Below are positions 3,025-62,708 of a stretch of DNA of 64,000 nt, piece by piece. The notes beneath the pieces were generated by a model. That model was given only the letters and a program-made list of their open reading frames with translations, was not told the origin of the DNA and did no database searches. The translations under genes were made by a program, and so were the position numbers. The number at the start of each line of letters is the position of its first letter. Position 1 is the first letter of the stretch. Source of the DNA: Cyanophora paradoxa CCMP329 (taxonomy: Eukaryota > Plantae > Glaucophyta); assembly GCA_004431415.1 (NCBI GenBank), contig QPMI01000017.1:124001-188000 (forward strand). The letters are read 5' to 3'.

Positions 3025-5837
3025 GAGGGTATGAAAAAGAATTTCCATTAATATTCCGAATTCGAAGTTAATTCGAGGTCCGGAACACGCGTACCCGCGA
3101 TTGACCGTGCCGTCGACGTCAGCGTGCGAGCTCCATCGAAAGGGCCGACGACGAGCGGTCCGAGCGGAGCTCAGCCGCTGCAGCTGGGCGCGCGCGCCTA
3201 ACTGCATCACGCGTTCGGAACGCGCGCGGGATATCGGTCGGAAGAGCGGCCGCGGCCGGGCCTGCACGCTTCCGTGAAGTTCGCTGATCAATTTCCGAAG
3301 TTCCTCCGCCATCTCTCCAACTGACACTGCGGCAATTTCTGGCGGTGAGCGTTGGCCATGGCCACGGGAGCAGCGGCAACGATTGCATCTGCTCGCAGCA
3401 TTGCCGTTGCAATTGCTGAAATGTCGATGATGCAGGTCGGCTGGCGCCGCGCGCCCCCGCCGCAGCGCCTGGCTTAGCTTGGAGCTGCGCTGCAGCTGCA
3501 GGTCTCCATTTGGCTTTGGGTTCGTGCATTTCTCCGAGGCGCACCTTTATTCGAGTTCCCGAACCGTGTCTGATATCGTTTGCAATCGCGATCTTCGGAT
3601 TCTTTCATGATCAGGTCTAGAAGATGCGCAACGTAATTGACGGCGACCTCGCGCGAGAATGATCATGAGCGGGCGCGCCAGATCCAACGTTGACGCGGCT
3701 TCGGCGTCCCTCGTCTTCGGCGCTCCCGTTTTGCTGGAGGCGGCGGTCGCCCGCATCCGCGCAGCAGCGCGAGCGCGAGTGGCCGACGCGTCGCGCGCGG
3801 GACCCGGCGCCGCGGCGACAGAGACGTCGACGCACGATCGCGTCGAGCTCTCGAGCCGCAGGTCCTCCAATGATTCCTTCGACACGTCGGACGCAGGCGA
3901 AGGTGAGCTCCAATCCCTCTCAAGTTACTCGCAATTGCGGCCGCAGTACAATTAGCTGTACATGTGGCAGACTAGCACGGGCCGGCGAGCTCGAGGCGTA
4001 TTTATATATATTATAATGCGTGCCCAGCTCCATGTGGTTTTCGAATTCGCGCTGACAATGCCATGATGAGCAGGCTCGGATGGCTGGCTCTCCATCAACA
4101 GCGACGAGGCGGAGGCCGTCCTCGCCGCCGCCGCTGCCGCCGAGGCCGTCCCCACCGCCCTCGGGCCCCTTACCCTCTGGGAGGTGCGCCGGCGGGCGCC
4201 ATCGCTATAGATCGAGCTCGAGAGCCTGCAAGACTCTAGATCTAGCTAGCGCTATTTCCCTCATTCCCGTGGCCAGGTACCATTAATATTTAAATATTGA
4301 TATTGCTCTAGCTGGCCTTGCATGGGTTCCGAATTTCGAATTTCGAACCCCCTCGAGCTCGCCTGTATATATAGCGCTAGCTCCCGCCGGGCCGATTTCC
4401 GGATCCCCTGCGCTATAGATAGCTCCTCTACATAAGTTAATTAATTTTCTCTCTACGTATACGTATATACGTACGTAATTCTAGCTCGGCCGCGCGCGGC
4501 GCCGGCGCGGGCGCCCCGATTTCGAATTCGCTTCGTCCCCGACGACTGATCGATCACTGCATGGATATCGATGGCGCCGGCTGCCGCGCAGGAGTGCGAG
4601 CTCGACACCTCGCGCGACACGGCGTCAACCGGCGCACCGCAAGCGCTCGAGGCGACATGTACGGCTGCAACTATCGCGATCGATGTCGATTGCGATGCTG
4701 GTGCACGCGTGGAGCCGGGGCGGGAATTGCAGCCGCATCTGCCCGCGCCGTCGGCGTCGACGTCGACGTCGCGCCCAGCCGCAGCTTCAAGTTCGGATGG
4801 CGCGGGTATGCAGAGCTCACGGCCGCCTCTGACCAAATTTGCTCGTCTGACGCTTTTCCGACGCGTACGGCGGTGCGCATGCGCAGCTGCAGCGAGTGCT
4901 GTACATGTGGCGCCGCGCTTTCGCGAAGGCGAGCGCGGCAGGTCCTCTGTTCTGGTGAGTGCAACCGCGACCGGCACGTGCACGCTTCCCACGCGCTGCG
5001 GCGCACAAGCGACAATTTCAAGAGGGGCGCCGCTAGCGCTGATCAAGAATGCGATGCGCGCATAGAATCCCATTCGCATGCGCACGTGTCCTTTTCACAG
5101 TACACGCAGCTTCGTTCAGTTCGAGCTTCGAATTCCGATGGCCGCTAGTCTGATTTGGGGGCTGGGGCGGGCCCCCCCTGCGCAGGCGTACGTGGCGTTC
5201 AAGCAGCACGTGGTCTTCCTCCTTGAGCCGGGGGCCGACCCCGCCGCAGGGCCCGCTGGCGCTCCCGACGGCGCCGCCGCCGCCGGCCGCCGCCGCATCG
5301 CCCACTGCCACGTCCCCGGCCCCGTCCTCAGGGTGCTTTCCCCTCCCCCACCCCGCCCACCGAAATCCCCCCGGTTCCTCAAACTTACATGCGAGGGGAG
5401 CAGATCGACGAGGCGGCGGCGCGGGGCGCCCTCGCCGGCGTCTGCCGCGCCCTCGGCATCCCCGTGGACCCGCCTTCCATCGGCTGGCACCTCCTCCTCC
5501 GCCCCTAGCCACGCCCGCCCGCCCCCGCTTGCACTGCAATTGCAAGTCGCCTTGTCGGTGCATCTTTGCCAGGCACATGCAGCGCTTGCCTGGTTTGATC
5601 CCCTATCTATAGCTATAGCTAGTCCCTTCAACCGCTGAGCCAACTGCAAGTCGATGAGATCGGATCCCGGCCCTATGCGATGATCGGCAGCTGGACCGGA
5701 GCCGGAGGGGGGGCCCCTAGGGGCGGGTGCGCAAGTGCGAGGGGGCGCCCTGGGCCCATTGGATTTGGCTCACGGGCACAAACTTTCTGAGCCCTGGCAT
5801 GGGGGCCTACGAGAGCGGCGGGAGGCAGGGGCGCGGG

Positions 5838-5900
5838 ACGGACTCAGGAGGGGGCGCAGGCCGGGTTAGCCTGTTTTCGCCGCCTCCATCACTGCTCCGC
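5838..5900 (-). promoter_or_regulatory. Eukaryotic type II SECIS element (GUGA core) in the selenoprotein 3' UTR
   Basis: Minus strand reads GCGGA-gca-GUGAU-GGAGGCGGCG-AAAA-CAGGC-uaacccg-GCCUG-CGCCCCCUCC-UGAG-UCCGU. This gives helix I, a UGA/GA core, a 10-bp helix II with one mismatch, unpaired As and an apical mini-stem, ~70 nt after the stop. Confidence 0.85.
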
Positions 5901-5972
5901 GGGGCGGGCGTCGTCCGCGCCCCCGCTGTCGCTGCTCATCGAAGGCCTCGCAGGGCTGAGCGGATCCGGCGC

Positions 5973-6410
5973 TCAGGCGCCGAGCTTGCCGAGCGCCTCC
6001 TCGATCTTGGCGATGAGGATGCTCTCGATCTCGCTCGGGTCGAAGCGACGCGGGTTCCAGCGGCTGGCGGTCGCCGGTGTGAGGGGCGTTCGGGCCTGCT
6101 CGGCGCAAGAGCGCGGGACGATCTCACCTCTGGTTCTCCTTCAGGATTTGGACGTTGACAGATTTATCGCCCACCTGCTCCAGAGTGACGGTAATAATGT
6201 TTGGCCTGTCCAAGCGCGCGTCAGGCGCGGGCCGGCACCGGGCTTGGGATCGAAAGAAATTGCAAGTACTCACCCGAAGTCCCCGCTGTCGACGCATTGT
6301 GCGCTAGGGAAGCGCTTGTTGATCATGCGTCGGCAAGCGGAGAACTCGCTCCACCCGCCTCAGGCGCGGTTGTACGCGATCGTGAATGTCAACGGCAAGT
6401 CCGCGGCCAT
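5973..6410 (-). CDS. Rdx-family (SelW/SelT/SelH-like) selenoprotein, 101 aa, NxxU motif; exons 6410-6274, 6205-6128, 6063-5973
   Basis: GT-AG introns of 68 and 64 bp splice to MAADLPLTFTIAYNRAUGGWSEFSACRRMINKRFPSAQCVDSGDFGPNIITVTLEQVGDKSVNVQILKENQSRWNPRRFDPSEIESILIAKIEEALGKLGA*. TGA at 6362-6360 falls at the Sec position of the SelW pattern (VxYCxxUG...FP), and a SECIS lies downstream. Confidence 0.85.
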
Positions 6411-7075
6411 CGTTCTGTACGAAAGAACGGACATGAAGGCAGGAAAGAACTCAAAGCCCGGCAGGAAAAGGGGGTGGGAAGGCAGTATTTTGGCGTGTGA
6501 CCATGAGCCCGGTCAGGCCTAGTCTGGTGTCAAGCAACGTCATGCCGCGCAGACACCGGGAGCGCGCTAGTGCCCACGAGAATCGCGCATGTGAGAGGAG
6601 GATTTAGGCCAACGTCGGCCGGCGTGCGCGGGTAAGTGACCATGTGCATTCTCGATGAAAACCCCAGAGTGCGCGGCCAGGTCCCTCTATGAACGCTTCC
6701 TGACCACCCAGACGTGGTAGACGCACATGGAACTTGGCTGGAAGACTCGAAGAGGAGGCTGAGGTTGGCAGGTTGGCAGAGGTTGCGAGCTTCGGGGTAC
6801 GCGGGCTGATCAGCCTGTAGGTTGTAGCCCCCGTGAAGCAACTGCGGCGCTTCAACTCCCGGGGATCCGTAGCGAGGGCATCCCTTCTATCACGCGCATC
6901 ACGTCTTTCACAACTCACTGGATGGGAGGCTGGTGGATGGGCCAGGACGGCCGCTTCTTGGGCCAGCGGAGAGCCTGTTTGCGGCAATACGCCTGCTAGC
7001 TATAGCTAAAGTGCAGTACCTTTTTGATAGAAACGCCCCGAGCTGCGGCCTGCTTGCCAGCTTTAGGTCTGGGCC

Positions 7076-8206
7076 ATGGCGGACCCCGCAGTGCCTGCCA
7101 GCCTGGCGGCGATGGGCGAGGAGATGGACGAAGATGACGTTCCGCCGTACGCGCGCTTCGGCATGGACCGCGCGGCGAGCGAGAGCGACTCGGACGAGAG
7201 CTCGACCTCGCCGGCGGCGGGGCCCGAGGAGGAGGCGGCTGCGCCGGCCGCCGCTGCCGCGCAGCCGGTGATGCTCATCGAGCACGACGAGGAGGAGGCG
7301 CCGCTCTTTACCACGGGCGTCGACAAGGAGGCGAGCGAGCGAGCGCCGAGATCGGGGGGTCGGGGCGCGGGGCCGCGTGGCTGAGCGGGCGGAGCGGGCG
7401 GCAGATGGACTCGTTGTCGGAGAGGAGCCCGCGGTCGCGGCGGGACTCGCACATCTCGGCGCGGAGCAGGAGCTCGCGGCGCGGCTCAGACTCCGAGAGC
7501 CGCGGCTCGACCCCCGAGTACATGTCCTACCTCGAGGCGGTCCGCCCGCGCCCCGGAGTCTTCCGCCGGCAGACCGGCCGCCAGGCTTCCGCGGCTCACG
7601 GCCGGCCCCGCGCAGCACGGCCTGCGCAAGTTCGGCGTGGAGAAGGGGGACGAGACGGTGCTGGGGGCGCTCCCCTCGGGCCGCGCCTTCTCGCACCGCC
7701 TCCGCCTCGAGTCGGCGCGCGTCAACCTGGACGACGTCTCCGAGCAGCCGCGCCAGGCCGCCATGTCCTTCGCCATGGTCCGCCCGCTCCCCTCTAGCGC
7801 CGGGTCGGATCTAATCTCTGGATCCCTCCGACCCTGGGGCGCAGGTGACGATGCTGGCGGCGGGGCTGAAGCGGCGGCGGGCGCGGAAGGCGGAGGCACG
7901 GGCGCAGCGGCGGGCGGCGCGGGAGCAGCGCGAGTTCGTCGGCTTCGCCGTCGACCTCGAGCAGCTCGAGCGCGAGGAGCGCGAGGTCCGCCGCCTTCCC
8001 TGACCCGCTTGGGCGGCCCGGCGCCGCGCTCGCCGGCTTGGCTGACTTTGCGTTGCGGGCAGCGGCGCGAGGCGGAGGAGCGGGAGCAGCGGGAGCGGGA
8101 GGAGCAGGAGGGCGCGGCGGCGGCGCCGGCGGGGATCGCCATCCGCCGCATCGACCCGAAGGCCCTCCCCCACAAGGCCCCCGCGGGGGGCGCCACCGAC
8201 CGCAGC

Positions 8207-24078: not shown

Positions 24079-27000
24079 ATGCCGGCGCCGGAGCCGCCGG
24101 ATTCGTACGAAGCGTACAGGCGGATCGGAAGCCTCAAGAGCCGCCTGGAGACCCTCGGCTATGGCGAAAGGCTCGTTCCTGAGGCCGCGGCGTTGACCGA
24201 GAGATTGCTCGAAGACCTGGTGGCAGTCTCTGGTGACTTCACCCGCTTCAAGTCCGAGAATGCCATGCAGGCGGAGGAGATCGGGAAGCTGCAGCGCCAG
24301 GTGCGCGGGGCGCGTCGTCGCGCCACAACCGCGGTGTTTGAGCGCCGCGCCGCCCAGATCCAGCCGCTGCGGAAGGAGAACGGCCGATTGATACGCGAGA
24401 ACAACCAGCTGCACCTGGAGCTCATCAAACTGGCGGAGGACGCCGACCAGCGGGAGAAGGAGCGGGCCCTGGCGACGCGGCGAATCGAGGGCCAGCTCGC
24501 GGACCTGCAGTTCATGAACGCCCAGCTGAGCGCGGACAAGAAGGCCCTCGAGCACGACCTCGAGCGCGCCCGCCTGCGCCTCCAGGAGCTCTTCAGCAAG
24601 GGCCCGCCTGGTGCGCGCCGCGGCCGCCTCCCCCGCGCCGCACGAGCGACGGGGCCCGCAGACAACTACTCGATCCAGCACCTGATGGACATGTCGAAGC
24701 CCCTCGGTGCTCCCCCGCGCCCGACCGCCGCCCGCCCGCGCTCCTCTGAGCCCCGCGGGCGGCGCAGAGTCGGCGGCGGGATGGAGGCGGCAGTCGGCGC
24801 TGCCGGTGCGGCCGACGCCGGACCCGAACGTGGTGGACGCACTGCGCGCGGCGGAGGCGCAGGCGGCGGCCCTCCAGCAGCGCACGGAGCGCGCCGAGGC
24901 GGCGCGCGAGGCCCTCCAGGAGACGGTCCGCCCGCCCCGGCGCCCGCCGCCTCCCCTCTGAGCGCGCGCAGGCGGCGGAGCTGCAGCGGCGCGTGGCGGC
25001 GCGGGAGGCGGAGATCGCGCGGCTGCAGTCGCTCACGGAGGCCGGCCGGGACCCGCAGACGGTCGCCGACCAGCACGCCCGCGACTCCAACCAGCTCCTC
25101 GTCCAGCAGGTCGCCCCGCACGCCTGCCCTGCGGCTTCTCCCAGCGGCCTCTTCTGAATGCTGGGCGCAGCTGACGGAGCAGATCGGGGTGCTGAACGCG
25201 GAGCTGGCGCGGGCGGAGGCGGAGCGGGCGCGGGCGGGGAGCAACGAGGAGGCGATGCTGCGGGCGAACGAGGAGCGGGAGAAGCTGGCGGCCGGCCTCG
25301 CCGAGGTCCTCCAGCGCAACGAGGCGCTGCTGGAGAGGGTCGCCCGCCTCCAGTCGGAGCTCGCGGGGGCCTCCGCGGGGCGCGATGAGGAGGTCCGCGC
25401 CGCCCGCCGCCGCGCCGAGGAGACCGCCGCCCTCGCCGTCGCCCACGAGACGTGCGCCCCGCCGCTCCGCTCGCTCCGCCCCGGCTCGTTCGCCGCCCGC
25501 CGCACCCCGCTGAGGCGCCGCGCCCCGGCTGCATGCAGGCGGATCGCGGAGCTGCTGCAGGAGCGGGAGGAGGCGCGGCGGGCCCGCGAGCTGCTCATCG
25601 ACGAGCTGGAGCGCGTGCGCGTCTCGCTGAACGCGGCGAGCGCGGACCGGGCGGTGCTGGCGGGCAAGCTCGCCGATGGGGACGCGGAGCGGGAGCGGCT
25701 GGGGCGGGAGGTGGCGCACCTGAAGGGGACGCTCACGGGCGAGGCGCGGGACCTGCAGCGCCGCTACGACGAGGCGGCCGCCGAGCTCGGCCGCGCCCTC
25801 GCCAAGGCGGCGGCGCTGGAGGCGGACCTGCGGCAGGCCCGCCAGCAGCTCGCGCAGGCGACGGCCGAGCGGGAGGCGGAGGCGGCGGTGATGCGCTCGC
25901 TGCGGGCGGACCTGGGCGCCAGCGAGGCGCTCGCGCGGCAGCAGGCGTCGGCGATGACGGCGCTCACGGCGGAGAACGAGAAGCTGGCGGCGGAGCGCTC
26001 GCGGGTCGGCGAGGGGGCGCAGGCGAGCGACCGGGAGCGGGCGCGGCTGGAGACGGAGGTCGCCTCGCAGGCGCGCAAGGTCCGGAGCCTCCAGGCCCTG
26101 CTCTCCCAGGCCGAGGAGGAGCGCGAGGCGCTCCGGGGCGAGGCGGCGCGCCTCGCCGGCACGCTCAAGGGCGAGCGGGAGCGGGCGACGGAGGCGGAGG
26201 CGGAGCTGCGCGGGCGCGCCGACGAGTTGGCGCGCGCCCAGGCGGCCCTTCGCGAGCTCGAGGGCGAGAACGAGCGCCTCGCCTCGCTCCTCGGCTCCAA
26301 CGAGCGGGCGCGCACGCCCCGCCGTCTCTCTTTCGCGCCCGCTGACGCCTGCGCAGGAGCTGCGGCGGACGGAGACGGCGAAGGTGATCGTGGAGCGGGA
26401 GCGCGAGTCGCTGGCGGCCGCCCAGTCCCGCGCGGACTCTCTCGCCGAGCAGCTCCGCCGGTGCACCCGCCCCCGCCCCCGCCGCCGCGCTCGCCGCGGC
26501 CCTCCGCTGAAGGCGCGGCGGCAGGGCGCTGGACGAGGCGGCGGGGCGGGAGGTGGAGGCGGGGCGCCTGCGGCTCGAGCTGCGGCGCCTCGACGGGCAG
26601 CTGGCGCAGGCGGCCGAGGACCGGGCGGCCTCGGCGGCGGCCCTCGCGGCGGCCTCGCGCCAGCGCGACGACCTCGTGGCCGTCAACGCGGAGCTCGAGC
26701 GCGAGCTGGCGGCCGCGCAGGCGGCGGGGCGCGCGGCGGGCGCCGAGCGCTCGCACGCCGACGAGCTGCTGGAGCGGGCGGAGGAGGAGGCGAGGGCGCG
26801 CCGCGAGGCGGAGAAGACGGCCCTCATGCAGGCCGAGCGCCTCTCCACCGCCCTGCGGGTCCGCCCTCCGCCCCCGGTCCTCATCGAGCAGACAGAGCTC
26901 TGAGGGCCGCGCAGCGCGTGGAAGGCGAGCGGGAGGCGGCGGAGGAGGCGGCGCGGCGGGCGGCGGCGGAGCTGGAGGCGGTCTCGCGGCGGGCGGAGGC

Positions 27001-28970
27001 GGCGCGCGAGGAGGCGGCGCGGGCGCGCAGCCGCGCGGACGCGGCGGAGGCGGACCGCGAGCGGCTGCGGGCGGCGCTGCGGGACGCAGAGGAGGGCCGC
27101 GCCGGCGACGCCCTCGCGGCGCGGCGGCGCGATGAGGAGGCGGCGGCGGCGCGGGCGCGGCTGCGGGGCGCGGAGGCGGCGGCGGAGGAGGCGGCGCGGG
27201 AGGCGGAGGAGCTGCGGCAGCAGGTCGAGCAGCTGCGGGCGCTCGTGGCGGCGCTGGAGCGCTCGCGCGGGGACGCCGCGGGGCGCGCGCACGACGCCTC
27301 GGGCCAGACCCGCGAGCTCCAGCAGCGCGTCGCCGCCCTCGAGGAGCAGGCTGCGGCGGCCAAGGCCGAGGCGCGCAAGGCGGCCGGCGAGGCGGGCGAG
27401 CTGCGCGCCGCGCTGGCGGCGCTGGACGGGGAGCGGGACGCGCTGCGGGACGAGCTGGACGCGGCGCAGGAGCGCCTCGCCGCCGCCGAGGCGGAGGGCG
27501 ACAAGGGGCGCGAGGAGCGGCGGCGGCTGGCGGACGCGCTGGAGAAGGCGAATCGGCAGGCGGAGCTGCTGGCGGAGCAGGCGACGCGGCGGGACAACGA
27601 GCTGCGGGCGGCCAAGGCGCAGGCGGCGCGGCTGGCGGAGGAGCGGGAGGCGCTGCAGCGGGAGGCGGCGCTGCGGGCGCAGGACGCGAAGACCCTGGGG
27701 GAGGACCTCAGGAGCCTGGCGCGGGAGAACCAGGCCATGGCGCGCGAGGCCGGGGCGGCCGCCGAGGCGCGGGAGCGGGCGCTGGAGCAGCTGCACGAGG
27801 CGGCGGCGCGGGCGAGCTACCTCGAGCAGGTCGTCCAGGCGGCGGGGCACGAGAAGGGCGACCTGCTGGAGGCGTACCGGGCGCTGGGCGAGGACAACGC
27901 GCGGCTGACGCAGGCCCTCTCCAACGCCGCCGAGGAGGCCGGCGACCTCCGCGCCCGCCTCGCCGCCGCCGAGCGCGAGGGCGCCGCGCTCGCGGAGGCG
28001 CAGCGGGCGGCGGAGGAGGTCATGCGGCGCCAGGCGCTCGACCTCCAGGCCCACGAGCGCCAGGCCGAGCGTGCGCCCGCCCCTCCCACCTTTCCCACCT
28101 GCTCCGCCTTGCTCAGCGCGCGCGCGCAGAGCTCTCGCGGGCGCTGCAGCGCGCGCACGCGCAGCTCGAGATGACCGCCGGCGAGAAGTCGGTGCGCCCC
28201 GGGCCCGCCGGCGCCGCCTCGCCTCCACCCCCCGCGCCTCACACCCCACACAGGCGCTCTTCCAGGACGCGACGGCGGTGCAGGCGGCGATGCGGGGCGT
28301 GGAGGCGACGCGGGAGGGCGCCGTGCGCGAGCTCGCCGCCGCGCAGGCCGACCTCTCCTCCGCCCGCGCCGCCCTCGCCGAGCTCTCCGCCGAGCGCGAC
28401 GCCCTCGCCGCGGCGCTCGCCGCGGAGCGGGCGCGCCTCAACGAGCTCGAGCGGATGATCGCCTCGCTGCGGACGGGAGAGGCCCGGGCGCAGTTCGCCC
28501 TGCAGCGCGCCGAGTCGATGGAGCGGGAGCTGGCGGCGCTGAAGGGCGGCAGGCCCGGCTCCGCGGCCTCGTCCCCCGGGACGCCGCCGGCCTCGGGCGG
28601 GGCCCGCACGGGCAGCGCCGCCGCCTCGCCGGCCTCGCGCCACAGCCCCGGCTCCGCCGCCTCGGCCTCGGCGGCGGGGGCGGCGGCGGCCGGCGACGCG
28701 GCGATGGAGCGCCGCGTGGCGAGCCTCCAGGCGACCGTCGAGCACCAGTTCAAGCGTGCGCCGGGGCGCCCCCGCCCCAGCCCCGCCTCCACAAAGCTCA
28801 GGCTCGCGCCCGCCCCCGCAGTGATCTCGGAGCTGGACGAGGAGCGGCTGCGACTGCAGTCGCGGCTGCGCTCCATGGGGCAGGACCCCTCGGGCCCCCC
28901 CGAGGGCACCCCCGAGGGGGCGCACCACTCCCCGCCCTCCGTCGAGTACACTTCGCTGGGGCCCGCCTAG
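24079..28970 (+). CDS. CEP135: Centrosomal protein 135 / basal body cartwheel protein BLD10, multi-exon
   Basis: N-terminus LKSRLETLGYGERLVPEAAALTERLLEDLV...IQPLRKENGRLIRENNQLHLELIK...ADLQFMN matches the conserved CEP135/Bld10 N-terminus. It is followed by a long coiled coil with EDLRSLARENQ and EKGDLLEAYRAL. Confidence 0.9.
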
Positions 28971-30369
28971 GGTCCCCCCTCCGTTCCCTCAGCCTGTACC
29001 GTACCCCCGCCCGAGGATGTCCCCCGAACTTGAGAAGGGACCGCCTCTCTTTTTGCCGACTTCTGGATTTTGCCGCCGGTGGGAGGGGGGAGGGGGAGAG
29101 AGGGGGGGGGGGGGGGGGGGGGGGGGACTTTTTTGAGAATTCGGGCCTGTCACAGTGTCGGGCGCTTCTCGAGCAGCGCAGCATATATGTGCGTATATGT
29201 GTGTACGTAGTTCAGGCCCGCGGCCGCGGCCGGCGACGGGGACCGTCGGACTTAATTGAAGCAGCGCGAACATATATAAGATGCCCATCAATGATTCAGC
29301 TGCGCAAGTTCGATCATGATCTGGCCGTCCATATGCGCCAGTCAGAACCCGAAATTAGCAACTGATTCAGTCAAGCTTAAGACTGAGCACCAGTTTCCTC
29401 GAAGTCTCAAGACCAAATGCAGGGTGCTCCCTTCTTGGATGCCATATTGAGTCAGCGTGCGGCCATCTTAACTTCGACTTGCCTGCCGGCAAAAATCAAG
29501 CGTTGCTGATCTGATCATGAAGGGCCGTGGATTCATGATCAGAGTTCAGAATTCAAGGGCACACTGAAAAAAAGATATTGATTAATAGCGCAAGCTTACC
29601 AGGGATGGTGCCATCCACTACCCAGATAACCCCTCTCAAATCTTGCACGAGCAATTGAAGGGGCACATTGAACTCCATGGTTTTCCCTGTGGTCATGAAC
29701 AAGCCTTGGCGAATGCAGTCGAATGCGGAAGCCGGCGAAATACGTGTACCTGTTAGAGTTTTGACAAGGATGTATGAGGTTCGGGAGCGATCAGCCTCTT
29801 CTCGCTCAAGCAACACGTCGAGCAGTAGTTCTCCACCCTCCGAGGCTCCCTGCGAATTACAGCATATCAATGAGCGAGAGAGACCATGCCAATCAGCCCT
29901 GCACTCAATGTATGTATACAGCTGCAGCTGCATGCGCAGCTGCACGCACTGAAGCCGGACGACAGGGTTAACGTTGGTGCGGCTGACGTCGATCCAGTTG
30001 CTCGAGTCGGATGTGCGGGCACGGGACGATGCCTTGCCCCTGCAGCTGCAGGAATTTCTTGAAAGAGAACCAAGAATCCAACGGACGGCCGATGCCCGAT
30101 TCGGCCGTGATTGTACTTCGTCCGCAACCCGGGTTGCAATTGGCGAATTCGTAGTTGAAGTCAAAAGAGAAGGCGTATTTGAACGTCGCCCACTCATTAC
30201 GGAAAAAATGTTGCTGAACACCTCGACCGCAGAAGCGACATCCATCAACGAGATTTAGCAAGCAGTCATTCTTTGCAAATTAAACAAAAATGTAAACCTG
30301 TTCCGAGGATGAAGCAGCCGCGACAAGCGCGCGGCGCGCATCCTCCGCAGAGGGCCGCGCTGCTGCTTC

Positions 30370-31350: not shown

Positions 31351-32483
31351 TGCATATGCTGGCCGCAAATGAAAGTGAGAAAACACAAGAGCTGGGGCGA
31401 ATTACGTACATGTCTCGATTTATTCGCACCTCAAGATCGCTGCTTCCGAAGTTCGCGTCGTAATTATAAGCGCCGCGCGGCTGCCTCGCGTTCCCCTGCC
31501 GAGCCGAGCGCCGCCGCCTCGATGACCTTCAACGCGACCGGCCATGCATATGAGCGGCAGCGATGTTCCATGATCAAATTAAATTAATTATCAAAGTCGG
31601 CAACCTCCTACGTATATATACGTATATATATACACTTTCCCGGTTTGACTGCAGCTGTTCCCGGCATCCCGGCCCGGCAAATTCGTAGGCCAGGGCCTGG
31701 AGGGGGTATACAAAGGCCGGGGCCTTGCAATTGGCCTGCCTGGGACCTAATCCGGATCCCGTACGCGTGGCAGGTCCCGACCTATATATAGCTACCCCCG
31801 TCATACCCGTACTACGGTATCTCCGCCTCCCGTGGCACTATATATGCGACTCCACTTGCAATTGTCTAGAGCACGTTCAATTCAACCCACACGCTTGTCA
31901 CAGTGTGCATGCAGACAGGGAGCTCGAGCCCGGCCCCGCGGCTGGCGCCCTAGGCGGCGTCCGTCGCGCGGGGCCGGGCCGCTTCGTGCCGCCGGGACCC
32001 ATGGCCACGGCCGAGGGGCCAGCGGCCGGCCCCGCGAGGGTGCCCCGGGGCGCCTGCCCCGCGAGGGCGCGCAGCTCGCCCTCGGCGGCGTTGCGCTCCT
32101 TCTCGAGCGCCCGCACTCGCTCCGGATCCTGCACTGCCACCGCCTCCGCCTCGGCGGTAGGCAGCTCCTCGCGCCGCCTCTGCAGCGCCTTGAGCGTTTC
32201 GAGCTGCCTACCCTGATTAAACGTAGTTCATTCTTCTGCTTTCCGTTCTTTAATTCTTAACTATGTATGCTTTCACGGGGACGTCGACCGGAGCAGCATA
32301 TATAGATTTAATTTTGAGTTCTGCTTCGCGACGGTTGAACAACATGAACTTGAACGACGAGCACCGTCGGGCACTAAATTACTGCGGCGTTAATTAACGC
32401 GGTTTCAAAAATGGCGCCGGCCCGGCCCTCCTCTGATCATGAGCTCGAGCAAAATACCGCGGTACCAAATTAACGCGTTTTAA

Positions 32484-33433
32484 CTAGCAGACCGCGCCCG
32501 GTCCTGTGCAAGTGCGGGAAGTGCGGGTTGCGCGTGGAGGTGCAAGCTTAAGGGGGGGGGGGTCCTTATATAATTATACACATTGCAGGGTACTTGGGGA
32601 TGGGGGAGGGGGTTGGGGTGTGAGGCTGGATATGGGGAGGGGGGGGGGGGGGGAGGGAGGGAGGGGGGTGGGATGAGGGGCGGAGGGGCGGGGCGGGGAA
32701 GGGGGGGGGGGGGGGGGGGGGGGCAGAGGTCCATAATTATCATCTTGAATAACAACTATTTCATTATCTAAAAAATAGGGGGGGGGAGGGAGGGGGGGGC
32801 AGAGAGGCAAGCTTAAGGCGGCCGGCCGGGCAGGTGGGGTGGCGACGCGGGCGGCGGCACCAGCGCGCGGGCGCGCGGGCGATCGCGAGGGCGGCGGCGG
32901 GCGGGAAGCCGGAGCGGCAGGTGGCGCCGGGTCCTGCGCATATATAGCCTGCGCATACGCAGAACCGAGGCGTCCGCTTAAGCCTGCCCCGGACAGCGGC
33001 TGTGCGCGGGCGGGGCCCAGCGGGGGCGGCCAGCTGCAGGCCAGATGCGCATGCGCAGCAGCAGCGGCGGGGCGAACCTCAAATCGACGAAGCCAAGGCA
33101 GCCGGCAGGGCGGCGGGCGGGGAAGCGGGCGGAGCGGCATGCGCACGTGGTGCACGTGCCGGGCACTGCGCGCTAGGGCCGAGGCGCCAGCGCGCTCTGG
33201 AGAGCGGCGGCGCGGGGGCGAGGCCCAGCGCGCGGCTAGCTATAGCTCGGCCCAGAGAATGCTGCGGGCGCTGGGGCGCTGTCCGCGGGTCAAGACACGC
33301 GTACGCGCGCGTGGCGTTGAGGCCTAGGCGTGCACGCGTACGCGTAAGAGCTGGCCCGCGGCTGCGCCGTACTACGGTACTCAAAGCTTGCAATTGCTCA
33401 CCGGCATGACAGCTCGTCGTGACTGCGCTTGAG
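32484..33433 (-). mobile_element. Non-autonomous Helitron-like repeat (copy B)
   Basis: Inverted homologue of 147-1171. Its minus-strand 3' end is GACCG-GGCG-CGGTC-TG-CTAG|T. A third degenerate 3' fragment lies at ~33819-33907 (+). Confidence 0.55.
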
Positions 33434-37847: not shown

Positions 37848-39508
37848 GCCGCCTCGCGCCAGCGGGCCGGGAAGACCTCGCGGCGGTCAACGCGGAGCTC
37901 GAGCGCGAGCTGGCGGCCGCGCAGGCGGCGGGGCGCGCGGCGGGCGCCGAGCGCTCGCACGCCGACGAGCTGCTGGAGCGTGCGGAGGAGGAGGCGCGGG
38001 CGCGCCGCGAGGCCGAGAATACGGCCCTCATGCAGGCCGAGCGCCTCTCCACCGCGCTCCGCGTCCGCCCGCCGCCCCGGCCCTCGTCGGGTAGGCAGAG
38101 TTCTGAGGGCCGTGCAGCGCGTGGAAGGGGAGCGGGAGGCGGCGGAGGAGGCGGCGCGGCGGGCGGCGGCGGAGCTCGAGGCGGTCTCGCGGCGGGCGGA
38201 GGCGGCGCGCGAGGAGGCGGCGCGGGCGCGCAGCCGCGCCGACGCGGCGGAGGCGGACCGCGAGCGGCTGCGGGCGGCCCTGCGGGACGCGGAGGAGGGC
38301 CGCGCCGGCGACGCCCTCGCGGCGCGGCGGCGCGACGAGGAGGCGGCGGCGGCGCGGGTGCGGCTGCGGGGCGCGGAGGCGGCGGCGGAGGAAACGGCGC
38401 AGGAACTCCGAGGGCGCCGCGCTAGCGGAGGTGGGCGCACGCGCACCTTGAGATGACCGCTGGCGAGAAGTCGGTGTGCCCCGCCGGGCCCGCCGGCGCC
38501 TCGTCTCCCCCCGGCGCCTCGAGGGCGTGGCGCTGGCGGGGCGCAGCGGGCGGCCGAGGAGGTCATGCGGCGCCAGGCGCTCGACCTCCAGGCCCACGAG
38601 CGCCAGGCCGAGCGTGCGCCCGCCCCTCCCACATTCCCCTCCTCTTCCTTCCTTCCTCAGCGCGCGCGCGCACAGCTCTCGCGGGCGCTGCAGCGGGCGC
38701 ACGCGCAGCTCGAGATGACCGCCGGCGAGAAGTCGGTGCGCCCCGGGCCCGCCGGCGCCGCCTCGCCTCCACCCCCGCGCCTCACACCCCACACAGGCGC
38801 TCTTCCAGGACGCGACGGCGGTGCAGGCGGCGATGCGGGGCGTGGAGGCGACGCGGGAGGGCGCCGTGCGGGAGCTCGCCGCCGCGCAGGCCGACCTCTC
38901 CTCCGCCCGCGCCGCCCTCGCCGAGCTCTCCGCGAGCGCGACGCCCTCGCCGCGGCGCTCGCCGCGGAGCGGGCGCGCCTCAACGAGCTCGAGCGGATGA
39001 TCGCCTCGCTGCGGACGGGCGAGGCGCGGGCGCAGTTCGCCCTGCAGCGCGCCGAGTCCATGGAGCGGGAGCTGGCGGCGCTGAAGGGCGGCAGGCCCGG
39101 CTCCTCCGCCTCGTCCCCCGGGACGCCGCCGGCCTCGGGCGGGGCCCGCACGGGCAGCGCCGCCGCCTCGCCGGCCTCGCGCCACAGCCCCGGCTCCGCC
39201 GCCTCGGCCTCGGCGGCGGGGGCGGCGGCGGCCGGGGACGCGGCGATGGAGCGCCGCGTGGCGAGCCTCCAGGCGACCGTCGAGCACCAGTTCAAGCGTG
39301 CGGCCGCGCGCCCCCGCCTAGCCCCGCCTCAAAGCTCAGGCTCGCGCCCGCCCCCGCAGTGATCTTGGAGCTGGACGAGGAGCGGCTGCGGCTGCAGTCG
39401 CGGCTGCGCTCCATGGGGCAGGACCCCTCGGGCCCCCCCGAGGGCACCCCCGAGGGGGCGCACCACTCCCCGCCCTCCGTCGAGTACACCTCATTAGGAC
39501 CCGCCTAG
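37848..39508 (+). pseudogene. Rearranged partial duplicate of the CEP135 3' half (introns retained)
   Basis: Highly similar to ~26650-27190 and ~27975-28970, with an internal deletion and a local back-jump at ~38400-38520. Confidence 0.9.
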
Positions 39509-40056
39509 GACTCCTCCGGATCCGTTCCTTCAGCCCGTACCGTAACCCCGCCCGAGGCTGCCCCCCGGACTTGATCATGAGAAGGGACCGCCTCTCGTTT
39601 TTGTTTTTTGGAAGGAGGGGGGGGGGGGGGGGTTCCGGTCGGGGGTTGGAGGGGGAGGTGGAGGTGGTGGGGAGGGGGGCGAGGTGGAGGTGGCGGTGAG
39701 GGGAAGGGGGGGGGGGGGGGTGCGGGGAGGGGGGGGGTGCGGGGAGGGGGGGGGATTTGAGTTTAATGATTTAATTCTTTATAATTAATTCTCTCTAGAT
39801 CTCGAGCTCATTTTCTCTTCAAGGCTCCAGAAAGTTCTCTCCATTTTCTCTTGCTTCAAGGCTCGAGCTTTATATACTTATAGATACGCTCCCCCCGTAG
39901 AGCTAGAGAGAAGAGCTAGAGATAGAGAGAAGGGAAATATAGGGGGTATATACTTTCTCCTCCGCAGCTCTTCTCTCTAGCTCTTCTCTCCGTAGTGCAG
40001 TCGGCGTAGTCTAGCTCGGCCACGTCACTGGCCCGGGCGCGCCGCGGCGCGATCTC

Positions 40057-41724: not shown

Positions 41725-42057
41725 CCGCCGCCTCGGCCTCGGCCTCGCGATCGGCGGCGGGGGCGGCGGCGGCCGGCGACGCCGCGATGGAGCGCCGCGT
41801 GGCGAGCCTCCAGGCGACCGTCGAGCACCAGTTCAAGCGTGCGCCCGCGTGCCCCGGCCTAGCCCCGCCTCAAAGCTCAGGCTCACGCCTGCTCCCGCAG
41901 TGATCTACGAGGCTCGGAGCTGGACGAGGAGCGGCTGCGGCTGCAGTCGCGGCTGCGCTCCATGGGGCAGGACCCCTCCGGCCCCCCCGAGGGGACCCCC
42001 GAGGGGGCGCACCACTCCCCGCCCTCCGTCGAGTACACTTCGCCGGGGCCCGCCTAG
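41725..42057 (+). pseudogene. Third copy of the CEP135 last exons; its 3' flank resumes after the LTR element at 55722
   Basis: Matches ~28655-28970. The downstream GAACTTGAG-AAGGG-ACCGCCTCTC is split by the LTR element. Confidence 0.9.
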
Positions 42058-42125
42058 GGTCCCCCTCCGTTCCCTCGACCTGTACCGTACCCCCGCCCGA
42101 GGCTGTCCCCCGAACTTGAGAAGGG

Positions 42126-57649: not shown

Positions 57650-60600
57650 ATGGACGTTACCCAAAATAATGCAGCGACTCGGCGCTTCCGGTTGGCCAGA
57701 ATCAAAGACCAGATCGAAGCGCTCGCGATTTCATTGTATAATCGACGCGTCATACATGGAGCTTTCAAAAATAAATTGATTAGAATTTCAGCACAAGGGT
57801 CGAGAACACGGTTTGCAACTTTGGAAAAGTACGCTTCACTTTTGAACGAACTTGCAAGACTTCCTAGGTCAGCGCGTCCTGTGTCAGGTCGTCGACTAGA
57901 GCTAGCGATTGCTGAGGGCCAGGCCGACATTGTTCGAGGGTTCTCAGAATTACCTGAGGTTGACGGTGGAGATGATGTTCAAATCAATGACAGCAATACG
58001 ACTACAGCGCTTGACGGGCGATATGCGGAGTGGAAATACCAATTGCCTCGCGGTTCTGGCCGCGTAACCTCGATGCAAGCCCGATTTGAGAACAACGAAC
58101 TTTTCAAACAGAACGCAATAGCATTCGTTAGCGCCCAGGTAAATCTTGCAGAGGCGGTAAGAATGGGCATTGCACTACAAATCTCTGGATTAGCGGTATA
58201 CAGAAAGCCAGAGACTGATACAACAATTGCAATCATTATTGAGCATCGTCGTTTCGATCGCATCGAGCCAGGGGCAAGCATCGAGACTGCTCTGCGCTCA
58301 CAGCTGGAAGAACTAGACATTCTTGCGACAGAGAAAAGCAGGGATTCCTCAGTTTTCGACACATGGATACATCTGGTCTTTAAAACTGTGCGATACTTCC
58401 GCCGCATGGGTGGTCGTGGACGTAGGTTCATACTCCCGCGGTGGCTTGTGGAGAAGCAGGCACTCATCAATATCGATGCTCCGAACAATGAATGCTTCAA
58501 GTATGCTGTACTTGCAGCTCAGCACGCGCTACGACCGGGCCAGGATTCACGCAGTGCTTGTCATTATCGACCGTATGAGAGCTCTTTAGACTGCACTATG
58601 CTCACATTTCCCACCCGCTAGATTCAAAGGTTTTCAAAAAGTTCGAGCAGGCTAACAACGTAAACCTATGTATTTATACGACAGCATTAGATGAACAGGA
58701 CATTGTACCAATCCATATCAGCGCAGCAAAAGACGCAATACCAATCTTGTATGTACCTGCAGGCAGCGACAATGATGTAGGGCATTATCTCTGGATCAAG
58801 AACATCTCACGTCTGTTTGGAAAACATGATTCTCCCGCCAAACACTATTGTCTTGCGTGTCAAACAGGTTTTAGCTCAGGTGCTGCGTTTGAGAATCATC
58901 TTAAATATGACCGTTGCCTCGATCGAGACGAGCATGCGAGAGATGTTCTGCCTAGAAAAGGAGCCCACATCCAGAAGTTTATTAACTATGAGTACTCAAT
59001 CCGGCAACGTCTGGTCGGATATGCTGATTCAGAGACGATTACAATGCCGATTCCCTGCATTAGTGGAAAGACCGAAAAGAAAGGTGTGCATGTGATTGCT
59101 TCAGTCGGCTGTCTGGTTGTATCTTCGAAAGGTGAACAATTTTGTTTCAAATACATGGGTTCGGAGAGCGAGGACTGCGCTGAGAAGTTCGTGCAATGGT
59201 TGGACGAAATGGAACCACAATTTCGAGAGCTCTTGCGAGAGACTGCACCAATCCAGATGACTCAGGAAGAGGAGCAGCGTTTTCAAACGAGGACCGAGTG
59301 CTACATGTGCACGGACACGTTCAAGGATGCGAAAGACAAGCACCGCGATCACTGCCACGATTCTGGACGATACCTCGGGGCCGCCTGCAGAGCGTGCAAT
59401 CGGCGTCGCGCAAAGGCAGCAGCCGTTCCAATATTCTGGCACAATGGTCGAGGATTTGACTTCCACCTGCTCGTGCGCGCTCTAGCATCTGGCTATAATC
59501 GCCGTTTAGCAGTTTGGAAGGAGTTTCAAGCACATGTCGAAAGCGAGTTTGAAAGCAAGTACGGTGGACGTGAGATGACCCCAGAGCAGAAAAAGAAGGT
59601 GAAGAAGGGGCTCGAACGCCGGCTCCGCCCGCAGAGTCTCCTTTCGATAAAATTCGATCAGTTCTTTCAGAATAGCGAGCGAATTTCGCAGTTCAAGTAT
59701 GGAATTTACGTTCTACGCGACTCGGCTCAGCACTTGAATGCAAGCTTGGACGAACTAGCAAAGGCTCTGCCCGCGGAAAAGAAGAAGATCACGCGCTCGC
59801 TGCATCTGGACGAGACTCAGTTCAAGCTGATGACAGGCAAAGGCATTTACCCTTATGATTACATGACGAGCTGGGCTCGCTTTCAAGAGACTAAACTACC
59901 TGCACGTCGTTATTTCAAAAATCAGCTTAAACAGAAGAAATGCTCGAAAGATGAGTACGCACATGCCAAGGATGTTTGGCGAGAGCTCGGCTGCAGAATG
60001 CTATCAGACTATACAATGGAGTATATGATGACAGATATCACGTTACTAGCGGACGTGTTCGAAAACTATCGCGATACGTGTATTGAAACGTATGGCCTAG
60101 ATCCTAGCTATTTTATGTCATCGCCGGGATTTGCTTGGCAGGCAGCACTTAAGCACACTGGAGTGAAGCTCGAGCTCTTTCACGAGGGACAGCAGGATAT
60201 GCACAGATTTATAGAATCGGGGATCAGGGGCGGAATCTCAATGATCTCAAAACGCTACGCACAAGCTGAGAACAAATATTTGAGCATAAAGTTCAACAAA
60301 TACACCCACGCTGTTGAGCCTACAGTCTCACAGTCTACATGCATGTCTAACTACTACCGAACACACAAGGAATCGTGGCTCATGTACCTCGATGCAAACA
60401 ACTTGTACGGCGTCGCAATGAAGCGCAAGCTACCCACAGGAGATTTCCGCTGGGATAAACTAGATCAAGACGTCGATGTAATGCAATACGTTGCAAGCCT
60501 TGACGCGGATGGAGCTCGTGGCTATGCTCTCGAAGTCGATATGTACATGCCTGAGCATCTCCACGACGAGTTCTCAGACTATCCGCTGGCCCCTGAACGG

Positions 60601-61706
60601 ATGTGTGTGTCCAAGGAACACCTATCAAAGCGACAACAGGATATGATTAACGACGAGAAGCTTACCTCAGTTGAACGAACTCCAAAGCTCGTTCCGAATC
60701 TGCTTCCAAAAAAGAATTATGTTGTTGATGGACGCTTGCTTCAGCTCTATACGTCACTGGGAATGATAGTAACCAACATCCATCGGGTCCTATCGTACGA
60801 ACAAAGCGCATGGCTAGGGCGTTTCATAGATCTCAATACTCAAAAACGTAAAGAATCGCAGTTCACATACCAGAAGGACCTTTACAAGTTGATGAACAAC
60901 AGTGTCTTCGGAAAGACGATGGAGAACGTGAGAAAGCACTGCTTTTCAGAGCTTGTGACTTCGGGAGACCGTCTGGTGAAGATCAACAGCGAACCAAATC
61001 GGTTGAAGCAGGTGGTGATGTACGAAGAGAACCTTGTATTCGTTTCCAAGCGCAAAAGTGAGTACAATCTGAACAAACCTATCTACTGCGGGTTCGTCAT
61101 CCTCGAACTTTCCAAGCTGCACATGTACCGCTTTTACTACCAGGTGCTCAAGCCGCTTTGGGGCCAGCGGCTGACACTATTAGGTACGGATACTGACAGT
61201 CTCATCATCGAGGTTCGCACCAAAGATATCTATGCTGATTTACGCTCAATCAAGCATGAGCTGGATGTTAGCGACTACCCAGAGACACATCGATTCTTCG
61301 ATGGCATGACAGCCGATGAGGTTCGAGCTCTACGATCGATGGGGAAAACTCCGGGATTATTCAAGGATGAGCTCCATGGTCTGCAAATGACAGAGTGGAT
61401 CGCTAACCGGCCGAAATCTTACTATTATTCGCGTGAAGATTGCACGGACAAGCAGGTATGCAAGGGTATTCAAAAGACGTACTACAACAGACTCACAAGG
61501 GATGTATTCCTCCGGTGCGTCTGTCCTAAAGAGGGAGAAAAGCAATCGTATGACATCAAAGGAATTCTCGGTTTCCGCTCGAAACAACATGAGATTTATT
61601 TACAACGAACCTCGCGCCAGGCTCTCCATCCCTTGATACCAAACGCTTCCTCGAGACTGACGGGATCAACACCCGAGCGATTGGCCATTATAAAAATCGC
61701 GCCTGA
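57650..61706 (+). CDS. pPolB: Protein-primed family B DNA polymerase (~1350 aa when two 1-nt frameshifts are repaired)
   Basis: LPRWL..KQALINI..NECFKYAVLA, YADSE, HRDHCH...CRACN, HNGRGFDFH, KGIYPYDY, YLDANNLYG, KLMNNSVFGK, TDTDS, GLFKDE and the true end DTKRFLETDGINTRAIGHY. Frameshifts at ~58615 and ~61633. Confidence 0.92.
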
Positions 61707-61715
61707 TTTACAACG

Positions 61716-62708
61716 ATGTACCAGATTACTGCGCCACCGGGTGCGTGGCAAATTGACGTGCTGTTCATTGGGAGATTTCGCCTGTTCGCAGCGGTCGAGA
61801 TTGCAACCCGTTTCGCTGTGGTACGTAAGCTCGAGACTTTTAAGCAGCTTCCAAAAATGATCGAGCAGCTACCTGGAATATGGGGCTTTTCAGGAGACAA
61901 CGGCTTCAACACAGCGGCAATTCGGGAAATGGCTGAAGAGAACTCGTTGAAAATGCATACTGATGTGGCTAAGGATGATCACATTTCAAAAGGCTCCAAG
62001 CTGGGAATTATCGACAGGTTCGCGAGGACATTGCGAGCACTGATTCAGACTGATACAGAAGCTCGTGGCTCCCCGCATTTCCTCTCACGTTTGCCGGCAA
62101 TTGTCAAGGCGTACAATGAAACAGCCCACAGCTCTTTCGGCGGGGAGCACTCACCGAAGTGGATGCGGGAAAATACACAGGTAGCCGAGCAGCTGCATCA
62201 AGTTAGACAGCGACAGAACGATATTGAACGAGACAATTCGAACATACCGCGCACAGGGACCGAAGTGCAAGTTCTCGAGCCGAAGCCAAGCGTTTTTGCG
62301 AAGGGAACCACAAAGCCAAGCAAGGAGACGTACATAGTTGCTGGCGCTGATAAGAACCGTGTTCGACTCGTTACGAAACAGGGTGTGGAAATTTCTAGAC
62401 GTGTTAAACCATCGGAAATACGTCAACCGCGTGAGCTTGCACCTCAAACACGAATCGAAAAAGAAGAAGTGCAAATGCGACAGCAGAGACGATTGAGACG
62501 TGAGGGTTTGATCGAAACGAAAAAATACAGCGGCCAAAGCCGGCAGTATCGAGAGCTCAAGAAGCTTGAGATTGCAGGGGAGCCAAAGCTACGAGCAGGT
62601 GCTAAAGCTGCATCACCTCGAGCTCTACAGAAGCTCCGCTCTTCGCAAAAAAAATGTAAATTGGGCATACTGCCCCACGAAATTATATATGGTAATAAAA
62701 TCGAATAA
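61716..62708 (+). CDS. Retroviral-like (rve) integrase of Polinton type
   Basis: WQIDV...SGDNG...LGIIDRFARTLR...LPAIVKAYNETAHSS. Starts 9 bp after the repaired pPolB stop. Confidence 0.85.
   Translation: MYQITAPPGAWQIDVLFIGRFRLFAAVEIATRFAVVRKLETFKQLPKMIEQLPGIWGFSGDNGFNTAAIREMAEENSLKMHTDVAKDDHISKGSKLGIIDRFARTLRALIQTDTEARGSPHFLSRLPAIVKAYNETAHSSFGGEHSPKWMRENTQVAEQLHQVRQRQNDIERDNSNIPRTGTEVQVLEPKPSVFAKGTTKPSKETYIVAGADKNRVRLVTKQGVEISRRVKPSEIRQPRELAPQTRIEKEEVQMRQQRRLRREGLIETKKYSGQSRQYRELKKLEIAGEPKLRAGAKAASPRALQKLRSSQKKCKLGILPHEIIYGNKIE

Follow-up and report, generated by a model that had tools for sequence, protein, structure and literature searches.

Introduction

In selenoproteins of the Sep15/SelM family (SELENOF and SELENOM; PF08806) a proline stands before strand 3, and the shape of the last helix is a further familiar feature. 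Single-selenocysteine sites of the peroxiredoxin and glutathione-peroxidase type read TxxC/U or SxxU, with the Thr or Ser at -3 holding the thiolate or selenolate. The Sep15/SelM domain has a strand-helix-strand-strand-strand-helix layout with its redox motif in a loop (PMC7687155), and algal SELENOF homologues with altered motifs are known (PMC7539508). The Rdx proteins (SelW, SelT, SelH, SelV and MIEN1/Rdx12; PF10262) are defined by a CxxU or CxxC motif after strand 1 and by the motif tGxFE(I/V) (PMC10650576). SelW binds glutathione (PMC10650576) and its Cys37 has been reported to form mixed disulfides (PMC11818150).

For the glaucophyte Cyanophora paradoxa, selenoproteins with SECIS elements, together with SecS and eEFSec, are reported in PMC6627142, where SBP2 is not found in the 2012 C. 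paradoxa assembly and glaucophyte transcriptomes yield SBP2 matches. Glaucophytes retain the tRNA-Sec (PMC13578239). New selenoprotein families are seldom found in eukaryotes. Here we describe a gene of C. paradoxa CCMP329 that lies in a window of 64,000 nucleotides, the whole stretch of DNA analysed (contig QPMI01000017.1, positions 124,001 to 188,000). The best explanation overall, to which we would give a probability of roughly 60%, is that it encodes an undescribed 101-residue selenoprotein with a thioredoxin-like domain and a lone selenol that is recycled by an outside thiol.

Gene structure and transcripts

The gene is spliced and transcribed in C. paradoxa. It lies on the minus strand and comprises 101 codons after splicing (Table 1), with a single in-frame TGA at codon 17 in the context I-A-Y-N-R-A-TGA-G-G and with cysteines only at positions 26 and 39. 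The initial annotation had proposed three exons giving a 101-residue protein with one in-frame TGA, and the transcript contigs bear this out: both coding introns are removed in contigs from three runs, belonging to three studies, and the main contigs retain the TGA without any difference and reach about position 5740, so that the SECIS element is inside the transcript. Since the GT-AG introns are absent from them, these contigs derive from RNA. The gene is also, as had been noted, missing from the mechanical list of open reading frames.

A third joint, seen in contigs of runs X15 and X19 from two studies, adds a first exon that is entirely 5' UTR and brings the total to four. The spliced 5' UTR is free of ATG, making Met1 the first start. 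The context of Met1 is strong, with A at -3 and G at +4, and that of Met29 is weak, with neither.

Table 1. Features of the selenoprotein gene and its transcript, in coordinates of the window.
Feature	Position	Strand	Basis
First exon, wholly 5' UTR and free of ATG; 5' end approximate	6727..6796	-	Joint 6414-6727 in contigs
5'-UTR intron of 312 nt (GT-AG), left in place in some contigs	6415..6726	-	Contig joints
Exon 2 of the transcript (coding exon 1), ATG at 6410, codons 1-45	6274..6414	-	Contigs, start context
In-frame TGA, codon 17, inferred Sec in N-R-A-U-G	6360..6362	-	Translation, contigs
Intron, 68 nt, phase 2, GT-AG	6206..6273	-	Three studies
Coding exon 2, predicted beta hairpin	6128..6205	-	Contigs, structure model
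Intron, 64 nt, phase 2, GT-AG	6064..6127	-	Three studies
Coding part of exon 3, C-terminal helix, stop TGA 5975-5973	5973..6063	-	Contigs, structure model
3' UTR, contigs end near 5736-5745	5736..5972	-	Contigs
Type II eukaryotic SECIS: GUGAU 5892, UGAG 5846, unpaired AA 5877, apical mini-helix	5832..5901	-	Pattern, Rfam alignment, shuffles

The 5'-UTR intron is retained throughout a long contig of run X17. It holds six ATGs, one of which, at 6434, is in frame and would add eight residues; retention could damp or alter translation. On the plus strand a divergent gene, very GC-rich and of low complexity, begins at 7076, about 280 nt from the first exon, and the two genes may share a promoter region.

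Public annotation and a second copy

A search with the frame of exon 3 retrieved a 73-residue EukProt protein from a cluster of two members, both from C. paradoxa. One, tig00000093_g3484 (P0002), is identical to residues 29-101 of the gene product and the other, tig00021254_g19723 (P0001), differs from them by S61A. The public gene model, being equal to residues 29-101, thus starts at Met29, drops the first 28 residues and omits the selenocysteine.

Run X19 contains a second expressed transcript for which five differences are listed, namely S61A and four synonymous third-position changes, one of which, at codon 25, falls in the stretch from the UGA to Met29. With 22% of sites synonymous, the ratio of 4 synonymous changes to 1 non-synonymous (p 0.009, for the differences listed) shows, as judged from these substitutions, a second expressed copy under coding constraint. 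The UGA of this copy falls at the contig end and its SECIS outside the readable part. The second transcript represents either a paralogue or a second haplotype.

SECIS element and inferred recoding of UGA17

The claim of a well-formed type II SECIS some 70 nt beyond the stop holds: the stem begins 71 nt and the GUGA core 80 nt past the stop codon. The hairpin resembles type II elements with a GUGA_AA core (Rfam RF00031) in its core quartet GUGAU/UGAG, in the 11-nt arm of helix II, the unpaired AA and the apical mini-helix, and in its position in the 3' UTR. It differs in being very GC-rich and in its score. In an alignment with Rfam SECIS_1 all 64 model positions are occupied on the right strand, with the core and the AA in place, giving 20.9 bits (E 0.053 for 4227 families) against a gathering score of 35, and an Rfam scan of 4 kb did not list the element. 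Such an element arose in 3 of 3000 dinucleotide-shuffled 3' UTRs (p 0.001), while the folding energy by itself is unremarkable at such a high GC content (z -0.67). The initial annotation had singled out the GUGA type; the GUGA core is indeed present, though it is no special feature, GUGA_AA being the usual SECIS core in several green algae (PMC3473315). A pattern scan of both strands of the window (128 kb) returned one other, weaker match, at 59599 on the plus strand (-15.5 kcal/mol), which lies inside a long open reading frame and is probably due to chance.

The spliced mRNA thus keeps the UGA and carries a SECIS in its own 3' UTR, as expected of a eukaryotic selenoprotein. The part upstream of the UGA also looks coding, given that 14 of the 15 third positions in codons 2-16 are G or C (p 0.013). 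For codons 29-45 the figure is 14 of 17 (p 0.026), and codons 18-28 alone give no significant bias. Together with the splicing and the Sec machinery reported for the organism, these observations argue strongly for the selenoprotein reading, and UGA17 is almost certainly recoded as selenocysteine through the SECIS, SBP2 and eEFSec, with translation starting at Met1.

Were the UGA instead a true stop, the locus would yield a 16-residue upstream peptide and a 73-residue protein from Met29, or would be a decaying gene, and the hairpin would be incidental. The annotated start at Met29, the fact that most of the changes listed for the second copy fall after Met29, the SECIS score under the Rfam cut-off and the older assembly in which SBP2 was not found (PMC6627142) would all agree with this. 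It is nevertheless very improbable in view of the strong context of Met1 and the coding bias of codons 2-16, of a SECIS that shuffling seldom reproduces in the right place and on the right strand, and of the other selenoproteins reported in C. paradoxa (PMC6627142); moreover, a 73-residue piece would miss strand 1 and the greater part of helix 1. With UGA17 read as selenocysteine, the gene strengthens the case for UGA recoding in glaucophytes, even though SBP2 was once reported missing in C. paradoxa.

Search for relatives

The gene product was searched as separate pieces. The largest search compared residues 29-101 with 1.84 billion representatives and returned no match except the sequences themselves; three weak matches were confined to brief segments of long proteins that were repetitive or unrelated. 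For the pieces searched, a word-based search and a metagenome scan yielded no relatives, and Pfam, NCBIfam, PHROGs, PDB sequences, plasmids and Atlas features were likewise blank. The first 28 residues, which are the likeliest to be conserved, were covered by a weak motif probe of viral contigs for YNRA(U/C)GGW, which found nothing. From the searches with residues 29-101 and the motif probe, no homologue outside the species emerged that would show Sec or Cys at the UGA column.

No paper describing this selenoprotein was found. Its motifs are absent from the available part of the supplement of PMC6627142, a survey based on profiles of known families, and an algal survey (PMC7539508) mentions neither Cyanophora nor NxxU. 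An orphan would be invisible to both, to the first because of its known-family profiles and to the second because Cyanophora is unmentioned. As far as the searches reach, the comparisons support an undescribed selenoprotein with no detectable relatives. The undescribed subfamily suggested at the outset is upheld to that extent, with no homologue of residues 29-101 found.

Predicted fold and comparison with Rdx and Sep15/SelM proteins

A single-sequence model of residues 29-101 (pLDDT 71) contains three strands and a long helix, and upstream of these both a strand at 7-14 and a helix at 20-34 are amphipathic. The combined order of elements is strand-helix-strand-strand-strand-helix. Fold searches made with fragments that omit the central first strand listed no thioredoxin-fold selenoprotein and nothing specific. 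The order of elements fits a minimal thioredoxin-like domain, which the protein quite likely forms, in the layout common to Rdx/SelW and Sep15/SelM, with the selenocysteine in the loop after strand 1. Met1 lies only 16 residues before the Sec, the maximal 11-residue hydropathy is 1.26 and no signal peptide is present, for which reason the selenoprotein is probably cytosolic.

For the comparison with Rdx proteins a profile was made from 38 sequences fetched by motif probes and confirmed as PF10262, many of them Sec-type members. The pieces before and after the UGA, scored apart, both fit Rdx best when the UGA occupies the Sec column. In this anchored register the positive-scoring positions are I11, Y13, A16, G18, I30, F34 and P35, and it ranks 2/624 among TGA sites of the window with a shuffle p of 0.00085, in a test that mostly measures strand and helix periodicity and for which Rdx had been chosen beforehand. 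Without the columns fixed by the search pattern p is 0.009, and with an anchored eukaryote-type SelW profile p < 5e-5. Towards the C-terminus the start of a helix at F79-D-P aligns with the start of the terminal F-P helix of Rdx (p about 0.09). The absolute anchored score is, however, -5 bits against 36-65 for members, and unanchored alignments of the pieces were not significant.

The gene product is like Rdx proteins in its size of about 100 residues, in having the Sec follow an amphipathic strand 1 within a Y-x-x-x-U-G pattern, in an amphipathic helix that ends in F-P at +17/+18, and in the three further strands and last helix without a signal peptide. A cysteine on strand 2 is near the position of SelW Cys37. 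In contrast to Rdx proteins it has no CxxU or CxxC after strand 1, where the sequence reads N-R-A-U with Asn instead of Cys at -3, and it has G-P-N-I-I-T-V with no match to the tGxFE(I/V) consensus. The hairpin of strands 3 and 4 is longer than in Rdx, and no Pfam, profile or structure match was obtained. The PF10262 family-profile score was not significant for the separate pieces, and residues 29-101 gave no Pfam match, which goes against Rdx membership. With the score of -5 bits, the unanchored searches and the two absent motifs, the likeness is one of layout, and on sequence the protein would be described as Rdx-like in layout and not as a shown member of the family. Of the Rdx/SelW-like fold initially proposed, the anchored register is what speaks in favour, and the profile, Pfam and fragment-fold searches and the motifs speak against. 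The proposed replacement of the Cys by Asn is accurate as to the Asn at -3; as a substitution it would presuppose homology, for which no Cys or Sec orthologue confirms the column.

Descent from Sep15/SelM, with loss of the signal peptide and of the partner cysteine, would imply that the protein acts outside the ER by reducing or isomerising disulfides. The shared layout, with the Sec in a loop after strand 1 of a minimal thioredoxin-like domain, is consistent with this, as are the proline that immediately precedes strand 3 (G46-P47), a final helix reminiscent of Sep15, and the absence of a GxFE motif; altered motifs also have a precedent among the algal SELENOF homologues (PMC7539508). The gene product differs in lacking the Cys-rich UGGT-binding domain, the ER retention signal, the CxU/CxxU motif of PF08806 and a signal peptide. 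Residues 29-101 match neither Pfam Sep15_SelM nor PDB sequences, and the register of Y-x-x-x-U-G with F-P at +17/+18 fits SelW without a gap, making this origin unlikely. Slightly less likely still is a selenoprotein of a non-thioredoxin fold or role, in which the likeness to Rdx would reflect a chance periodicity of strands and helices. Such a reading would account for the pieces having no significant sequence or structure match and for the negative absolute Rdx score, but not readily for an anchored register that fits both before and after the UGA with a collinear C-terminal helix, nor for predicted elements that match the minimal thioredoxin fold in order and number.

Several sequences from the Rdx comparison are of interest in their own right. 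The minus strand of a 1535-nt contig (L142, Ga0307382_10056390) has a single frame of 463 codons in which four SelW/Rdx domains follow one another, each with YCGGUGY and its own in-frame TGA (codons 87, 185, 282 and 386). The frame ends in a TAG stop followed about 40 nt on by a SECIS-like hairpin, which makes it a four-Sec poly-SelW. L172 (122-151, plus strand) and L246 are diverged Sec-type relatives of SelW in which a long insertion separates strands 3 and 4, and from these insertions it follows that the strand 3-4 hairpin can lengthen in the family. On a Thermomicrobium roseum plasmid (L248, 151-405) the motif region is matched from 151, and the annotation places the start of the Rdx gene further downstream, at 223; this may be a selenoprotein gene or a Cys-motif gene with a wrongly assigned start.

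Proposed mechanism

If the thioredoxin-like fold is right, Sec17 would sit in an exposed loop after strand 1, and with Asn14 at -3 no local selenenylsulfide would be possible. The target of the selenolate would be a peroxide or a protein disulfide. Glutathione or some other outside thiol would then recycle the oxidised selenium, perhaps via Cys39 on strand 2. The selenolate may be held by Asn14, much as it is by the Thr or Ser at -3 in peroxiredoxin-type sites.

The initial annotation had offered either a mono-selenol mechanism or the use of the distal cysteines C26 and C39. C26, nine residues from the Sec, is on the buried side of helix 1 and in a column that is hydrophobic in Rdx, and is therefore probably structural rather than resolving. 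C39 is on strand 2, 22 residues past the Sec and near the position of SelW Cys37, and may have a part in recycling. With no Cys at -3, C26 buried, C39 so placed and glutathione binding known for SelW, a cycle with a single selenol is the one favoured, and we infer that the protein works like a SelW-type redox protein. Given the fold, we lean somewhat towards the complete scheme of outside-thiol recycling with a role for Asn14. Peroxiredoxin and glutathione-peroxidase sites are similar in that the redox residue is the second of a CxxC-derived motif with a polar residue other than Cys at -3; the gene product is far smaller, has no recognisable catalytic residues of either family and gave no match to them.

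Were the fold indeed Rdx-like, the protein would be a natural test of whether SelW-type function needs the Cys of CxxU, the alternative being that a selenol alone, recycled by glutathione, suffices. As it stands this is an orphan selenoprotein with an unusual site, known from one species. It is a tentative suggestion, with the odds somewhat against it, that it is the first representative of a new eukaryotic selenoprotein family, with an Asn-x-x-Sec site and a single-selenol minimal thioredoxin fold without a partner cysteine, present in other glaucophytes or protists and missed by all homology-based surveys.

Other features of the window

A long coiled-coil-like gene has its 3' part, at 26664-28971, duplicated at 37868-39509 with 94-99% identity, about 10.5-11.2 kb downstream, and a third, partial copy is present at 41737-42058. 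An element of about 1 kb occurs twice in inverted orientation, at 148-1172 and 32483-33433, the two being 75-92% alike in pieces. At the AT-richer end of the window, 58747-61860 on the plus strand is a 1037-codon open reading frame with an Endonuclease_7 domain (PF02945, E 9e-07), which hints at an insert of mobile or viral origin.
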